64,000 bases of DNA from Botryllus schlosseri (taxonomy: Eukaryota), in assembly GCA_051294905.1 (NCBI GenBank), contig CM119371.1, positions 27,404,001 through 27,468,000 on the forward strand, in the 5' to 3' direction. Positions 13,878 to 28,891 of this stretch are shown here, in pieces. The notes under the pieces are model-generated. The model was not told the origin of the DNA. It saw only the letters and a list, made by a program, of their open reading frames with translations, and did not search any database. The translations under genes and the position numbers were made by a program. Within the stretch, counting starts at the first letter, position 1. Each line of letters starts with the position of its first letter.

Positions 13878-14030
13878 TCATTTCGTGGAGCATTCGGCGA
13901 CATAATCGAATTCCAGGAATTGCGCTTGCTCGGCCCGGCTCAGCGTCTTGTTGTTTTCGTGCGGGGGCGTTAAGACCGGGTCTTCGTTCGTGAATTCCTC
14001 GTCGAAGTTACTGACATCGGTCGCGGAACG
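13878..14030 (-). CDS. PKN: PKN terminal exon (K7): [50 protein letters not shown]
   Basis: tttacag acceptor, 51 codons ending in TGA; contains the AGC turn motif (TPP) and hydrophobic motif (FLEFDY). Confidence 0.95.
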
Positions 14031-14082
14031 CTGTAAACAAAAAATAGCCATTGCGACATCAATGTCGATACTGCATTACAGG

Positions 14083-14640
14083 CAGGGTTGTAATGACTCC
14101 AGTCGCGATTTTTTTGTGACTCGTCTTGACAAGAGTCATTTTTTCAAATGCGTAAAATGACTTAACTCAACTCGAGTCAATTTTTGTATCGAATCGACTT
14201 GGAGTTGAGTCATAATGTACGACTCGAACCAAGTCATAGGACTCGAGACTAGGACGGCCAAGACAGACATTTCCTTGTGATTCGAATAATAGTAAAGTCA
14301 CCACTGTATTTGCATTTCGTCTTTCAGTCCTAATACTTGGAAAATAGGGCCGAAATTGTTGACTGAGAAAAATTACGGTATTATGAATGCGAGCCGTTCT
14401 CTATCACTCGAGCAGAGTTGAAAAAGTGGGTCGGACCGGATTGAACTGAAAACTCATCCATGAACAGAATGACTTGGACTTGAACTCGAGTCAAAATACA
14501 ATGACTCGGACTCGGTGGTGAAAATTATTGAAACAATATTTCACGGTGACATAAACCATACATTTTCCTTACCGGTACTGAAAAGTATATATTCCCGATA
14601 CCACACTCAGATTGTTGTGCCAGAAATGTATCAACTACCT
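14083..14640. mobile_element. GAGTC/GACTC-rich hAT-like MITE
   Basis: CAGGGTTGTAATGACTC terminus; flanks ATTACAGG / ATTACAGA; right terminus degenerate. Confidence 0.7.
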
Positions 14641-14732
14641 ATTACAGACCCTCCTGCCTTAGTTACGGTTACCGCGAGATCCTGCCAGTCACTCGTTGAT
14701 ACGTAACAATTCTAGAATAAAGTAGAACTCAC

Positions 14733-14792
14733 AATAGTTGGAACAAACGGCGGAATGATTTTCTTTTCCAAAAGGGCCATCCAATCCAGCTT
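14733..14792 (-). CDS. PKN: PKN exon K6: KLDWMALLEKKIIPPFVPTI
   Basis: ttgcag acceptor, gtgagt donor, phase 0-0; AGC C-tail PPFVP motif. Confidence 0.93.
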
Positions 14793-14991
14793 CTGCAAGA
14801 AAATATTTAGTAAGCAATCAATCAATCTGGTTTGTACACTATGTACACTGTACAGTAACCGATAATTACAAAGAAAACACACAATAATTATGACATAACA
14901 TTGATTAGTTAGTACTTATTGAGGTAGTACAATGGACTCAGATGATAAATATTCTCATGGTTGGGAACCTCCGCTGTATAATTATCTAAAA

Positions 14992-25262: not shown

Positions 25263-25372
25263 CCTGTCCAGGTCTTTAACGAAACGCGCGTCCCAGCATT
25301 GCTGATTGATCGGTCTGTACATGGTTTCGCAAAACAATTGATTGTCCAGCTTCAGGACTGCCATGACTTCAT
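25263..25372 (-). CDS. PKN: PKN C2-like domain exon a: DEVMAVLKLDNQLFCETMYRPINQQCWDARFVKDLDR
   Basis: ttcttccag acceptor, gtgatt donor, phase 1-0; AVLKLDN...WD..F..LDR motif. Confidence 0.92.
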
Positions 25373-26327
25373 CTGGAAGAAAAGAACCAGTGTTTCCCAA
25401 CAATGGACAAAAGCAAATATTGCCTGAAACGAAATTGTCACTACACAATGAGTTCACGTAGGGGCTGAACAATGTCTCGAAGTGTGATCAGTAATCATTC
25501 ATACCTAGCTATCAATCATCGCATTATGACGGATGCGTAAAATCCCAGTAAAACGCTCAAAATCTTTACCGGTAGGAATAAAAATAACAAGAGTATTCAT
25601 ATCTGCGAATAATCCACAACACAACCGCGGTGCATTACAAAAATAAAATCAATCACAATATTAGCGGCTGTAGTGGCACAAGGCCGATGCATATCATGAC
25701 AGACAGTGTTGCAATTGAATAAAGAACAATATATAAGACTACAAGTCTTTGTGCAAGTGTTATTTCGTAAGGCCATGACTTGATATTGTCATCGTGAAAT
25801 CGGTGAAGCCAGGTGCGTTATATCCCATAAAATCGTGAAATACGTATACGCAACATATAATCAGTAACCTTGACAAACTATATATCACAATATTGTGTCT
25901 CGTCATATCGCAGACAGTTTATCAGAACAGATCGCTTTTTGGTGAGTCTACAAAGTTATGGAAAAAAATCACGTACTGCTGGATGGATATCTTAAACGGT
26001 AGTTAAGCTGTAATGATGTCATAAATTCGGAAAATAACATTTGTGTGCAGGCTACATCATATTTTACAATCACTCTCAATCTCAATCATTTATACGGTCA
26101 TACATACATATTGCAACCAATCACAAAGTATTAGCAATACCAGATGGCAGAAGCCTTCTGAGTATTCTAACGTGTGATGAAACGAAACAAAATTACTCAC
26201 AATCGATAATTCAAACAAAAAAATCAATGAGCCAAATGGATGCTGTTGATTAGAAGTATTTGATCATCCGACACACAGAGTGGAACTATTCGCATAACAC
26301 GGATTGTGTATTTGCATCGATTTGGGA

Positions 26328-27675
26328 CAGTGGTTCTCAACCTTTTTTGACACGCGCCCCCCTTGGAGATGGTCAAAAAATTCGCGCCCCCCCTTACCCC
26401 CTTGCATTTATCGTCATGTCAAAAAGAGCACATCATCTAATACAGAGGTGGACAACGTTTTTGATAATCATGGCTGCATTTCGATTGCTTATGTAGCGTA
26501 AGGCCGCATTCCAGGGCATAGCCGCAATGAACGATCTGGACCCAAAATACCTATGGTAAACTGTCCATATCCATTCCCGGTGAACTCCGGACATCTACTT
26601 TTCACAATGGCCTATTGTACGCACCGAAATCGCGAGTGGCAATGTTATGAATAGTTGCCGGGAGCTGCATATTGTCGCGCGGAGCGCGAAAATTTTTCAG
26701 GGCCGCGAACGAATTGTTATTTCTTGCCAGTTCCCATTCCGGCTCAGATTAAGAAGGGCGCTACTGCATTAAAATCGAAAAATGAAGTCTTGTTGAATTG
26801 CGCAGAGGGCGAAGAAAATTTCAAGATTAATTAAAATCTCTCGGAAATGCGGGAGTCAATTCGTAATTGCAATTTGCATGTCTACGGCCGTCAACACATA
26901 CTAATTAAAATAGGCGCCGACGGCCGCTCCAATTCCCTTCTACGGCCGCAGGCTGCCCACCCCTGATCTAATAGTATACATAAGGTCTATCTTACGCCAA
27001 TTTTGAATCTGCATTCCAGTTGTTGAGTCTTTTACATTGCTGACAAATTTCTCCAAACTTGTTTGAAAATAACAAAAAAACATTGAACAAGACATCCATC
27101 AATTAATTTCATGGTAGGTCACCCCGAGACTAATCCTGATGCTGGTAGTGAGTACAGAGAGCAAGGCGTCGTTCCGTCCTGCCAGGCTAAATTTGATCAG
27201 TTTTGAAAATTAATTAAATTGTATCGATTTAGAGTAGCCTAATTGAGGGCGAAACCGGGCAACCTATGTTGCATCTAAGTCTCTCTTAGGCAGTGCAGTT
27301 CGCAAGCTACTAACAAGAGCTGCCCGGCGCGACAAGCTTTAGGCTACTGTCAAAGCTATGAAGCAATAAATGACTTACACGTGGGAATTGCTCTCTATAT
27401 CTCCAAAGAATTTCAAAAACTTGCTTAAATGAAGTTGAAATCAGACTATACTCCGTTGAGCGCGGTTGCTAGAGTTTGTATTTTGCAAACTTTCTTGAAT
27501 ATGGAATAAATTTCATCTTCAATAATCGTCTTCTCATGATGGATGTGAAACACATGTTCAGACACGTACAATTTATACTGACTTTGTCAATTTCTCGCGC
27601 CCCCCCTATACTGACTTCGTCAATTTTTCGCGCCCCCCTGAGAGCCTCCCGCGCCCCCCAGGTTGAGAACCCCTG
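26328..27675. mobile_element. hAT-derived composite (left TIR 26328, right TIR 27675, internal hAT end near 26955)
   Basis: CAGTGGTTCTCAACC and GGTTGAGAACCCCTG termini, but the flanks do not form a TSD, so the pairing is uncertain. Confidence 0.55.
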
Positions 27676-28278
27676 CCATAGGTGGATTAATACGCGTTTG
27701 ATGTATCGATTTAGGGATCCGGCCCACCAAGACCTTCATTTTCCCATTTCCGGCCCGCGGAATGCAGAAGGCCCGCCCGTGGTCTACCGTCGCTATAATT
27801 TGACGTAGTGTGCAGGTTTTGAAGAATTGCGACAGCCTGCGAACTCACAACTTACGGGTAGGCTCTACTCTCGTACTCTAATCACACACACACACGCGCG
27901 CGTTTAAGAATAAATTACAGTCACTATCATTTGACGGGATAAGCAAATTGTGGGGGATTGCAGCAGACTGGCTGTGGGCCACATCATCATGTACCACCGG
28001 AAACTCTATGCGGGCCGCTCAAAATCACGTCGCGGGCCATATGTTGCCCGTCCCTGGGGCATGTCATTTAAACATAATAGGGTATATTCGAAAAGTCTCT
28101 AGTAGACAACTCAGAATATATGCTGAAGGTATTTACTAATTGAAAACTGTCCTTCAGTTGACTACCTTCAGGTGTTAATTTTTACCTCAAATTGAAAGAC
28201 GCTTCGATATGTAATGAAATATAACGGACATTTAACCGATTAGAAATAGACGGCGTTAGTTCTAATGACTACTTTTAC

Positions 28279-28891
28279 CTCTTCCGATTGATCTTATGGT
28301 GCCACTCTCAATGATAACTTGCCTTGCTCTCTACTTTCGGAGTCATGGATTTCGGACAGTGTGCGGTGGCGAGGCACACCGGGACCAATCGATGAAAACA
28401 ACGGCAGACTTCCAGGTCCGTCTGCATTGTTATTTTGATCAGTTCGACTACTATTGCTGTTGTTTAAATTGGCTTCCCCATCATTCCCGTCGTCATATGC
28501 TGTAGTTGTCGGTTCTGTTGAATTGGCATGGTCCTTACTAGAACCCGTGTACTATCATGCGACGATAATGAAATCCATGCCAGTTATGCCCCGCATGACA
28601 ATACTTTGCTATTTTCGAACATACCTATTTCATTGCACGTTGAGCCCTCCAACAAATTAGGGTCAAGCAGCGGTGAAAAGTCCTCGGCGGTCGTATCGTC
28701 GCTTCTTGATCGGAGCAATTTCAGCTCGACATTGCTTAACGCCGGATACTCAGCAATCTGTGCTTCTGGGTGGCCATGCGCACCTGCCGGTATATCATTT
28801 CTGCTGCTGTGAGCCTCTACCGGACTAGCCGCCTCAAGCCGTGAGGATAGTGGCGTGAAGACAACAGGAATCCATTGTCCAGTGCCACGGT
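28279..28891 (-). pseudogene. Large disabled exon encoding a low-complexity, probably disordered segment (DRGTGQWIPVVF...RHRTLSE...DQSEE)
   Basis: ttctag acceptor, gtaaaa donor, 613 nt. Two in-frame TAA and an apparent 1-nt deletion near 28545; would be phase 1-0 if restored. Confidence 0.65.

Follow-up and report, generated by a model that had tools for sequence, protein, structure and literature searches.

Does an apparently intact set of PKN kinase exons, found in Botryllus schlosseri without any HR1-coding exon beside it, represent a young, Rho-independent kinase or a pseudogene whose reading frame is still open? The exons lie in a stretch of 64,000 nucleotides of contig CM119371.1 (positions 27,404,001 to 27,468,000; the window), for which a first-pass annotation made from the letters alone had proposed a young kinase. 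We find that the locus is probably a very young unprocessed pseudogene, with a clean open reading frame (ORF) that was inherited and not maintained.

Comparison with the rest of the genome by blastn showed that the copy corresponds to the 3' two-thirds of a PKN gene: the entire kinase domain, preceded by the final two C2 exons and followed by the C-tail and the 3' flank (Table 1). Copy and parent align, introns included, in collinear blocks of 78-90% identity; the aligned stretch reaches from within the intron preceding exon C2a to a point about 3.1 kb beyond the stop codon. The parent on C16 is the genome's single full PKN gene (HR1a-c, C2, linker and kinase) and the only close paralog of the copy, and genome-wide matches to the HR1 profile (PF02185) were confined to C16 and C6. 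The insertion between exons aG and turn matches C16 upstream of the parent and was considered as a relic of a larger duplication; this was rejected, as it is a multi-copy transposon. Searches of protein databases found neither the protein of the copy nor that of the parent itself, and these blanks are uninformative.

Table 1. Features of the PKN copy and its surroundings (window positions, except for the parent segment).
Feature	Position	Strand	Remarks
PKN duplicate	10787..26309	-	unprocessed (intron-containing) segmental copy of 3' part of PKN gene
Parent PKN gene segment matched by copy	C16:5491277-5506689 (contig G000:C16)		
Last exon	14030-13878	-	Pkinase_C, LTPP, FLEFDY; stop TGA at 13880-13878
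Exon turn	14792-14733	-	start of AGC C-terminal tail
Multi-copy transposon	15029..16411	.	in intron between aG and turn exons; missing at same place in parent
Exon aG	16686-16498	-	alphaG to kinase-core end
Exon APE	18375-18233	-	activation-loop Thr, APE, alphaF; five derived amino-acid changes
Exon cat	18582-18443	-	catalytic loop YRDLKLDN and DFG; 4 synonymous, 0 non-synonymous vs parent
Direct repeat, lower copy (A)	18999..20237	.	1239 bp
Exon aC_A	20036-19860	-	lower copy; derived changes: Tyr to Phe in hinge, Leu to Ser
Exon GlyA	20260-20102	-	complete Gly-loop/AIK exon; authentic acceptor; ATG 20244-20242
Transposon block	20711..22791	.	TE1 with nested TE2 (~21576-22285)
Direct repeat, upper copy (B)	22792..24030	.	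1239 bp
Exon aC_B	23829-23653	-	alphaC to hinge, upper copy; amino acids identical to parent
Exon GlyB	24040-23895	-	Gly-loop/AIK exon without its first 28 nt, joined at 24029/24030 to 15 nt that were once intron
Hypothetical mini-intron	24041..24101	-	61 nt; authentic C2b donor (GTAACG) and cryptic AG
Exon C2b	24248-24102	-	147 nt, end of C2-like domain; in-frame 3-nt insertion (extra Ile) vs parent
Exon C2a	25372-25263	-	110 nt, middle of C2-like domain; in-frame ATG 25364-25362
Filler	26310..26327	.	18 nt between end of PKN homology and transposon; resembles sequence ~30 nt past transposon's other end
Young non-autonomous hAT-like transposon	26328..27675	.	marks 5' truncation junction

The eleven minus-strand exons total 1601 nt and read through for 533 codons with no stop or frameshift, reproducing the figures of the first-pass annotation. 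The motifs it had listed are all present in the translation: the Gly loop (GRG(H/S)FGKV), the AIK lysine, the alphaC Glu, YRD, DFG and APE, as well as the LTPP turn motif and the FLEFDY hydrophobic motif of the AGC C-tail; the activation-loop Thr is also retained. Together, the exon pieces tile positions 3-263 of the Pfam Pkinase profile and match Pkinase_C (E=1e-14), and the best solved-structure matches of the kinase exons are PKN2 (4CRS) and PKN1 (4OTD). The two short C2 pieces, searched on their own, gave no Pfam match.

The claim that no splice site is broken stood in part. GT..AG is found at every intron, but the acceptor of the APE exon is weakened from CAG to GAG, and the join of C2b to GlyB needs a cryptic AG, which lies 61 nt past the donor, has a poor pyrimidine tract and is plain intron in the parent. 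On the resulting mini-intron depends the 418-aa product, which starts at the ATG of C2a and skips the lower N-lobe pair; joining C2b to either of the authentic acceptors downstream (aC_B or GlyA) shifts the frame. The spliced form was found in none of the sequencing runs examined, the sensitivity of which was low. The ATG is where it had been reported and does open the 418-aa ORF, but it is an ordinary internal Met, methionine being the commonest residue at this position in invertebrate PKNs. Moreover, exon C2a starts in the middle of a codon and was thus formerly an internal exon. The ATG in GlyA (MKDFRS...) opens a potential 334-aa kinase-only ORF that uses authentic splice sites only and is close in length to crystallised PKN catalytic constructs (341-residue chains).

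Homology to the parent stops abruptly in the intron upstream of C2a, at 26309. The upstream exons had been described as disabled; instead, neither in 25380-31000 nor in the rest of the window did we detect any remnant of HR1a-c, of the first C2 exon or of the linker exons, using the parent exons as queries in blastn (word size 7), tblastx and shuffle-controlled Smith-Waterman searches. The reported lack of an HR1-coding exon was borne out across the window by both DNA and protein searches. The C2-like domain of the copy is incomplete, only its last two exons being left, and the linker exons of the parent (four by ORF scan) are missing. The hAT-like element at the junction has terminal repeats CAGTGGTTCTCAACC, shares up to 98% identity with more than 40 other copies and has an empty paralogous site. 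Its other copies are flanked by 8-bp target-site duplications, whereas the one at this locus has no matching duplication (ATTTGGGA vs CCATAGGT). The deletion adjacent to the transposon may have taken native flanking DNA only, rather than gene sequence.

Further downstream, the two N-lobe exons are present twice, within a direct repeat the copies of which are 97.8% identical (27 differences, 2.2% diverged). The Gly loop of GlyB (GRGHFGKV) is identical to that of the parent; in GlyA its His is replaced by Ser (Asn in another sample). The transposon block fills the exact space from repeat copy B to the intron upstream of GlyA, and it stands in place of the parent's 2.4-kb linker-exon region. TE1 is 88-92% and TE2 94-96% identical to other copies, and all runs showed very high read depth over the block. 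The breakpoints of the linker deletion are shared with the duplication of the N-lobe exons and lie exactly at TE1. Over the junctions of the locus as a whole, including the 5' one, the anatomy comprises 3-nt microhomology, a short templated filler and breakpoints at intact element ends. The divergences of the transposons and of the repeat, although rough as clocks, place these junctions and the 5' truncation in about the final fifth of the history of the copy.

A repeat of this kind, together with the linker deletion, could also arise from haplotypes mis-joined during assembly, and the divergence between its copies is within the haplotype range that general knowledge leads one to expect for a highly polymorphic invertebrate. 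We nevertheless regard such an artefact as very improbable. The window contains no sequence gaps, and all 30 bins have coverage in an independent DNA sample (X5), in which one contig crosses the 24029/24030 junction. The same sample has the A-specific upstream intron and, beside B/parent-type sequence, an allele of its own (an Asn codon) at the copy-A Gly loop.

The exons of the copy carry a clear record of past constraint. Relative to the parent, dN/dS was 0.10-0.13, far from the value of 1 that had been named as evidence against a functional kinase, with dS of 0.16 and noncoding K of 0.10; indels numbered 7.8 per kb in noncoding sequence as compared to a single in-frame indel in the exons. 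Under neutrality over the whole history, the probability of an intact frame is about 5e-4, and 43 amino-acid changes are expected as compared to 14-17 observed. Before the tandem duplication, the N-lobe exons had accumulated 2 non-synonymous changes, while neutrality predicts 9.4 (P=0.005). The rejection of neutral decay over the whole history indicates that the copy was translated for most of its life, and the substitution pattern argues strongly that it was formerly a gene under protein-level purifying selection. Thus, the proposal of a young kinase was right in that the locus is not long dead; the constraint, however, predates the present HR1-less and linker-less form and is not creditable to it. 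Gene conversion was also considered as the cause of the clean exons and was rejected, given that exon dS is not below intron K.

Neutrality restricted to the time since the tandem duplication gives a different picture, with a 0.18 probability of an intact frame and 10 expected changes. A two-phase model, in which parent-like constraint is followed by neutrality, fits the data: it predicts 11-20 non-synonymous changes, and 16-20 were observed. Since the duplication, copy A has gained 4 non-synonymous and 0 synonymous nucleotide changes and copy B 0 non-synonymous and 2 synonymous ones (P=0.07 under neutrality), all of these being small numbers. Two of these observations speak against a pseudogene: the lack of any stop, frameshift or lost GT/AG is only about 0.18 probable if the copy has been neutral since the rearrangement, and the pattern of copy B would fit continued selection on a product with a single N-lobe.

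We polarised the differences with a close outgroup (P0390/L030); this was limited to amino-acid changes because synonymous sites are saturated relative to the outgroup (57% of third positions differ). Fourteen of the 15 amino-acid differences were derived in the copy. Overall, 11-14 derived changes fell in the copy versus 1 in the parent, corresponding to a protein that evolved about ten times faster. Columns conserved at 80% or more took 5 of 12 changes along the path through copy B and 7 of 15 along that through copy A, with a random expectation of 49%; the corresponding share is 11.6% in functional PKNs and 1/68 in the parent. Thus, the changes of the copy fell without regard to conservation, in contrast to those of functional PKNs (P=0.008). 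They include the alphaF Gly, which is invariant in 38 PKNs and is Arg in the copy, and two conserved glutamates that are now lysines, turning the IFEMLVGE of the parent's APE exon into IFKMLVRK.

With regard to expression, four runs yielded no copy-specific spliced contig or read, a result of low sensitivity that is no evidence of silence. Spliced contigs over the exons in X9 carried the parent's diagnostic letters and lacked the copy's 3-nt insertion, the contig in X6 was unspliced (contigs drop rare variants), and in the 6% of a bulk RNA run (X23) that was read, the parent was represented by about one read and the copy by none. The expression check suggested by the first-pass annotation therefore found no copy-specific RNA, but as a weak test that barely detected the parent. 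The suggested look for disabling variants revealed no nonsense or frameshift allele of the copy in one other DNA sample.

These results bear on the original idea of a PKM-like gene, in which a promoter within a transposon or the former intron would drive the truncated copy, which would encode a Rho-independent, constitutively active PKN, either of 418 aa (C2 remnant and kinase, via the cryptic intron) or of 334 aa. The intact ORF with every catalytic motif, the low dN/dS and the lack of disabling variants in the second DNA sample would all fit such a gene, as would the upper N-lobe pair, which has seen no amino-acid change since its duplication. Biochemistry speaks for it too: loss of the N terminus activates PKN1 and PKN2, and their proteolytic fragments without it are constitutively active, as the first-pass annotation had stated, while the lipid-relieved autoinhibitory segment of PKN lies at or adjoining the C2-like domain (PMC7925014). 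The resemblance of the 334-aa ORF to the crystallised catalytic constructs points in the same direction. We nonetheless consider this gene unlikely, since the measured constraint is older than the present architecture and the substitutions ignore conservation, including the alphaF Gly, the two glutamates and the Gly-loop His. Moreover, the 418-aa product can be had only through a weak cryptic acceptor, as authentic ones shift the frame, the APE acceptor is GAG, the C2 remnant is without the domain's first exon, and no copy-specific transcript was found, albeit in a weak test. A more specific form, in which transcription from the hAT-like element or TE1 would yield a Rho- and lipid-independent catalytic protein of 334 or 418 aa, attributes both the reversed charges of alphaF (E to K, G to R, E to K) and the changes in the Gly loop to a shift in substrate preference and not to decay; we rate it as somewhat less likely again.

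The locus might instead be expressed without encoding a kinase. Its transcript could be non-coding or a target of NMD, or could encode a protein, either with two N-lobes or made of a C2 fragment, that interferes with the parent PKN or titrates the partners of the latter, such as PDK1 via FLEFDY. The hydrophobic motif and C-tail are indeed well kept, the double-N-lobe read-through is open over all its codons, and the likeliest splice choices, which use authentic acceptors, lead to premature stops. Expression of this kind appears improbable to us, given that no transcript evidence supports it and that a decoy role leaves the pre-rearrangement constraint across the whole catalytic core unexplained.

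We therefore favor the very young unprocessed pseudogene. Its history would have begun with a DNA-level duplication of the single PKN gene, of which it now holds a part, followed by purifying selection on the exons, in a gene that may have been truncated, chimeric or full length, for about four fifths of the time since then. Recent rearrangements associated with double-strand breaks or transposons would have produced the present form. The 5' end as it is now probably goes back to a deletion that stopped at one end of the young hAT-like element, with the loss of upstream gene sequence and of a promoter, if there was any. Another transposon end would have been the site of a second event, which removed four linker exons and duplicated two N-lobe exons. 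Most likely, neutral drift has acted since, for a time too short to introduce a stop or frameshift, and the copy would be nonfunctional today.

As it stands, the locus shows in well-dated steps how a signalling kinase can be taken apart after its duplication: long constraint was followed by two transposon-linked rearrangements, which stripped every regulatory module and left the catalytic ORF open. For annotators it is a warning that clean exons and a dN/dS much below 1 can report past history and not a function of the present architecture. If expressed, the copy would offer a natural equivalent, hard-wired in the genome, of the PKN fragment that is constitutively active, and one of the rare cases in which the truncation of a gene has given rise to an AGC kinase with no regulatory domain.

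Among known systems, the copy resembles unprocessed pseudogenes and partial segmental duplicates in its copied intron-exon structure, the location of the parent on another chromosome, the missing 5' exons and, presumably, promoter, the transposon-filled introns and the roughly tenfold faster protein evolution. It differs from them in having no stop, frameshift or lost splice dinucleotide and in its past purifying selection, as it was not dead on arrival. With the PKN/PRK kinases (human PKN1-3 and Drosophila Pkn) it shares the kinase type, the AGC tail with turn motif and acidic FxxFDY, and the second half of the C2-like domain; unlike them, it is without HR1a-c, the first C2 exon and the linker, has duplicated N-lobe exons and carries Arg in place of the alphaF Gly. 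PKMzeta, an atypical PKC reduced to its catalytic domain, arises from a promoter inside PRKCZ, with both transcript and protein demonstrated. The product of the copy, if translated, would likewise be an AGC kinase stripped of its autoinhibitory N terminus, as are PKMzeta and the caspase-generated fragments of PKN1 and PKN2; PKMzeta, however, owes its form to an alternative promoter in a gene that is itself intact, whereas the truncation of the copy is genomic, recent and transposon-linked. Deletions and duplications adjacent to transposon ends, arising from aberrant cut-and-paste transposition or repair, have been described for hAT elements such as Ac/Ds. The rearrangements at this locus are alike in their breakpoints at intact element ends, the missing target-site duplication, the templated filler, the 3-nt microhomology and the combination of a deletion with a nearby direct duplication. 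The junction anatomy is thus suggestive of an Ac/Ds-type mechanism, although recombination between two copies of an element would look the same.

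Only one other PKN-like locus was found in the 495.5-Mb genome that holds the window, G000:C1:27404001-27468000. It lies on contig C16 and is complete, with HR1a, HR1b, HR1c, three C2 exons, linker exons (four by ORF scan), kinase, and tail. Positions 10787-26309 of the window are collinear with C16:5491277-5506689 at 78-90% identity, introns and 3′ flank included; the truncated locus (the copy) is therefore an unprocessed segmental duplicate that covers the 3′ portion of this gene (the parent). Homology ends at 26309, within the intron upstream of C2a, and blastn (word size 7), tblastx, and Smith-Waterman searches with shuffled controls found no remnant of the HR1, first C2, or linker exons anywhere in the window. 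Thus, the first-pass annotation was right that no HR1-coding exon is present, and the "disabled 5′ exons" that it described do not exist, the copy being a plain truncation. Elsewhere in the window, two similar blocks (47784-50071 and 59309-60325; 80-84%) match C16:5489025-5490948, directly downstream of the duplicated part; they are not collinear with the copy and may represent another repeat or gene family. A MITE-like inverted-repeat element (17727-18064 and 15447-15539; 17762-18064 self-pairs at 83%) has counterparts at the matching position of the parent's intron and at several further C16 sites.

The eleven-exon model proposed earlier was reproduced to its exact total of 1601 nt, with GT..AG at every intron and all 533 codons open. 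The N-lobe is encoded by two exon pairs, an upper (GlyB and aC_B) and a lower one (GlyA and aC_A), and skipping the lower pair gives 418 amino acids from the ATG at 25364. Every catalytic motif previously listed was found in the translation. The exon pieces tile Pfam Pkinase positions 3-263 and Pkinase_C, and the closest solved structures to the kinase are PKN2 (4CRS) and PKN1 (4OTD). Among the features that define PKN membership, the locus has the kinase and the tail and lacks HR1 and a complete C2. Copy-diagnostic sites fall in the C2 exons (25362, 25349, 25321, 25317, 25311, 25299, and an ATC insertion at ~24231), the kinase exons (20204/20205, 19923, 19899, and the GTCCGGAAG block at 18233-18241), and the 3′ UTR.

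Exons of the copy and the transposon block within it
Feature	Window position	Strand	Remark
C2a exon	25372-25263	minus	rebuilt from sequence
C2b exon	24248-24102	minus	rebuilt from sequence
GlyB exon	24040-23895	minus	rebuilt from sequence
aC_B exon	23829-23653	minus	rebuilt from sequence
TE1/TE2 nested block	20711-22791		TE1 ~1.4 kb; TE2 ~0.7 kb at roughly 21576-22285
GlyA exon	20260-20102	minus	rebuilt from sequence
aC_A exon	20036-19860	minus	rebuilt from sequence
cat exon	18582-18443	minus	rebuilt from sequence
APE exon	18375-18233	minus	rebuilt from sequence
aG exon	16686-16498	minus	rebuilt from sequence
turn exon	14792-14733	minus	rebuilt from sequence
last exon	14030-13878	minus	rebuilt from sequence

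Comparison with the intact parent, proposed in the first-pass annotation, gave dN of 0.017-0.021 and dS of 0.16, with dN/dS at 0.10 for coding sequence read through the upper pair (upper path) and 0.13 through the lower (lower path), not near 1. Aligned noncoding sequence (6 kb of introns and flank) showed K = 0.10 and 7.8 indel events per kb; the exons carry a single indel, of 3 nt and in frame. With exon dS no lower than intron K, gene conversion was rejected as the source of the clean exons. When neutral drift was simulated along the copy's entire branch, the probabilities of no stop (0.13), no frameshift (0.02), and intact splice dinucleotides (0.17) gave a joint probability of an intact copy of ~5e-4, and 43 amino acid changes were expected against the 14-17 observed. 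Thus, the copy was translated and selected during a large part of its history.

The N-lobe and linker region has since been rearranged. Both N-lobe exons are contained in each copy of a 1239-bp direct repeat (18999-20237 and 22792-24030), and the repeat copies differ at 27 sites (2.2%), about one-fifth of the copy-parent distance. The 2.08 kb separating them is all transposon, TE1 with TE2 nested inside, and the ends of this block are the rearrangement breakpoints, with 3 nt of microhomology. The upper repeat copy is cut inside the Gly-loop exon and joined at 24029/24030 to an intron, 72 nt downstream of C2b, a fusion that takes away the parent's 2.4-kb linker region. The linker deletion and exon duplication are much younger than the segmental duplication. 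Both transposons are high-copy, with word depth 100-1000x that of unique flanks in every sequencing run, RNA included; a TE1-like copy also lies in the parent's C2a-C2b intron (C16:5503875-5504437).

Amino acid changes were polarized with a spliced PKN mRNA from a related species (P0390/L030; Logan contig of SRR32906210, 3365 nt), whose partial ORF of 535 amino acids covers linker, kinase, and tail; compared with the parent, it shows 20 differences in 340 residues (6%) and differs at 57% of third codon positions. In kinase and tail, 14 of 15 differences are derived in the copy and one in the parent, a polarization with which 38 more distant PKNs agree; counted along the upper path, the figures are 11 and 1 (exact two-sided binomial P = 0.006). 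Among the derived residues, Ser replaces His in the Gly loop and Phe replaces Tyr in the hinge; alphaF has gone from IFEMLVGE to IFKMLVRK, losing a Gly shared by 38/38 PKNs and two Glu that are 84-95% conserved. Conserved columns, in which at least 80% of PKNs share the parent's residue, received 5 of 12 changes on the upper path and 7 of 15 on the lower, with 49% predicted by random placement; such columns account for 11.6% of consensus departures in working PKNs and 1/68 in the parent (P=0.008 and 0.0008). Judged from sequence, the copy's changes look like unfiltered mutations.

Before the tandem duplication, the N-lobe exons gained 2 nonsynonymous changes versus 9.4 under neutrality (P=0.005); since then, the lower copy has gained four nonsynonymous and no synonymous nucleotide changes, and the upper copy none and two, respectively. 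A two-phase model, with parent-like constraint followed by neutrality from the rearrangement on, predicts 11-20 nonsynonymous changes (16-20 observed) and leaves the ORF intact with a probability of 0.18. Hence, no present function can be read from the clean frame. The earlier view that this is not a dead pseudogene holds insofar as the copy, once translated and selected, is no ordinary dead one.

The predicted products also face obstacles. C2a begins mid-codon without an upstream exon, and the ATG at 25364, noted earlier, is indeed in frame in C2a but encodes an unremarkable internal Met, the residue that invertebrate PKNs most often have at this position. Keeping frame from C2b to GlyB requires a cryptic AG 61 nt past the donor, preceded by a purine-rich stretch that is plain intron in the parent. 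Introns of 65-67 nt occur in the PKN gene and the parent's 65-nt intron was seen spliced; thus, signal strength rather than size is the obstacle. Splicing C2b to the authentic aC_B or GlyA acceptor shifts the frame. At the APE exon, the acceptor has changed from CAG to GAG, and G at position -3 of 3′ splice sites is strongly disfavoured. A second candidate ORF, starting at the ATG at 20244 (MKDFRS...), would encode kinase and tail in 334 amino acids through authentic splice sites only; its promoter would have to lie within TE1 or a 450-bp intron remnant.

Distal to 26309 lie 18 nt of filler, similar to sequence just past the far end of the 1.35-kb nonautonomous hAT-like element that follows (26328-27675; terminal repeats CAGTGGTTCTCAACC...GGTTGAGAACCCCTG). 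Other copies of the element have 8-bp target-site duplications. Members of the family lie at over 40 further sites in the genome (one is G000:C14:7824156-7825505), with identity to the window element of up to 98%, and the family was recently active, since many copies are 95-98% identical. The window element has no matching target-site duplication (ATTTGGGA on one side, CCATAGGT on the other), and the native C1 sequence past it has a 92% paralog, 58 kb off, that shows an empty site. Both observations suggest that the element first entered native DNA and was brought up against the PKN intron afterwards, by a deletion with one end at its tip. Like the linker deletion and the exon duplication, the 5′ junction arose long after the segmental duplication. 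Paralogs of both flanks of the PKN segment (27676-29458 with G000:C1:27371899-27373665, 92%; 6791-7707 with C1:27368179-27368869, 83%) are found some 58 kb along the chromosome with just 3 kb between them, a spacing that resembles an unoccupied target for the PKN segment; nothing in the window corresponds to these 3 kb. Two long minus-strand ORFs (30587-32238; 249 and 200 amino acids) immediately upstream of the truncated gene resemble, by eye, the reverse transcriptase of a non-LTR retrotransposon.

Four runs (X23, X9, X6, and X5) were aligned to 19840-25839. X5, another DNA sample, covered 30/30 bins, yielded contigs of both parent and copy type at C2a, contained the intron upstream of the lower pair that is specific to it, and included a contig (~24000-24111) bridging the deletion junction. 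The rearranged structure is therefore real, and an assembly artefact is highly improbable. The Gly-loop codon that specifies Ser in the window and His in the parent reads as Asn in X5, so this residue of the lower copy is polymorphic. A check for disabling variants found no coding indel or stop in this one other DNA sample. At 19967, 24138, and 24176, contigs from X5 and X9, unrelated samples, share letters absent from the assembled parent and copy, which points to high polymorphism; X5 depth at C2b suggests that parent and copy exons may be identical in that animal, possibly via occasional gene conversion.

X9 (RNA-type contigs) gave two spliced contigs, both parent mRNA: one with the aC-Gly join and the parental His, Thr, and CGC (375 nt upstream fall outside the stretch), the other with the C2a-C2b join and without the copy's 3-nt insertion; no copy-specific contig was seen in X9 across 19840-25839. 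The X6 contig was unspliced. X23 (raw bulk RNA, 6% read) gave about one PKN-exon read, with a non-copy letter, the rest falling almost entirely in the transposon block. No copy-specific spliced contig or read thus appeared in the four runs, in a comparison where X23 was read at 6% and hardly detected the parent itself. Past selection and the open frame speak for a PKM-like neogene, which we nevertheless regard as unlikely given the splice obstacles and the unfiltered changes; another expressed role is less likely still. An unprocessed partial duplicate that lost its regulatory half shortly before fits best, and a very young pseudogene with an inherited open frame is, in our judgment, the most likely reading, somewhat more probable than not.

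PKN1 and PKN2 are kept inactive by their N terminus, through an HR1a pseudosubstrate, dimerization, and a segment, situated at or beside the C2-like domain, whose inhibition lipids relieve, and their proteolytic fragments without the N terminus are constitutively active (PMC7925014). In contrast to PKN1 and PKN2, the predicted product of the copy would carry none of these inhibitory elements, which makes the analogy with a regulatory-domain-less kinase, drawn in the first-pass annotation, sound in principle.
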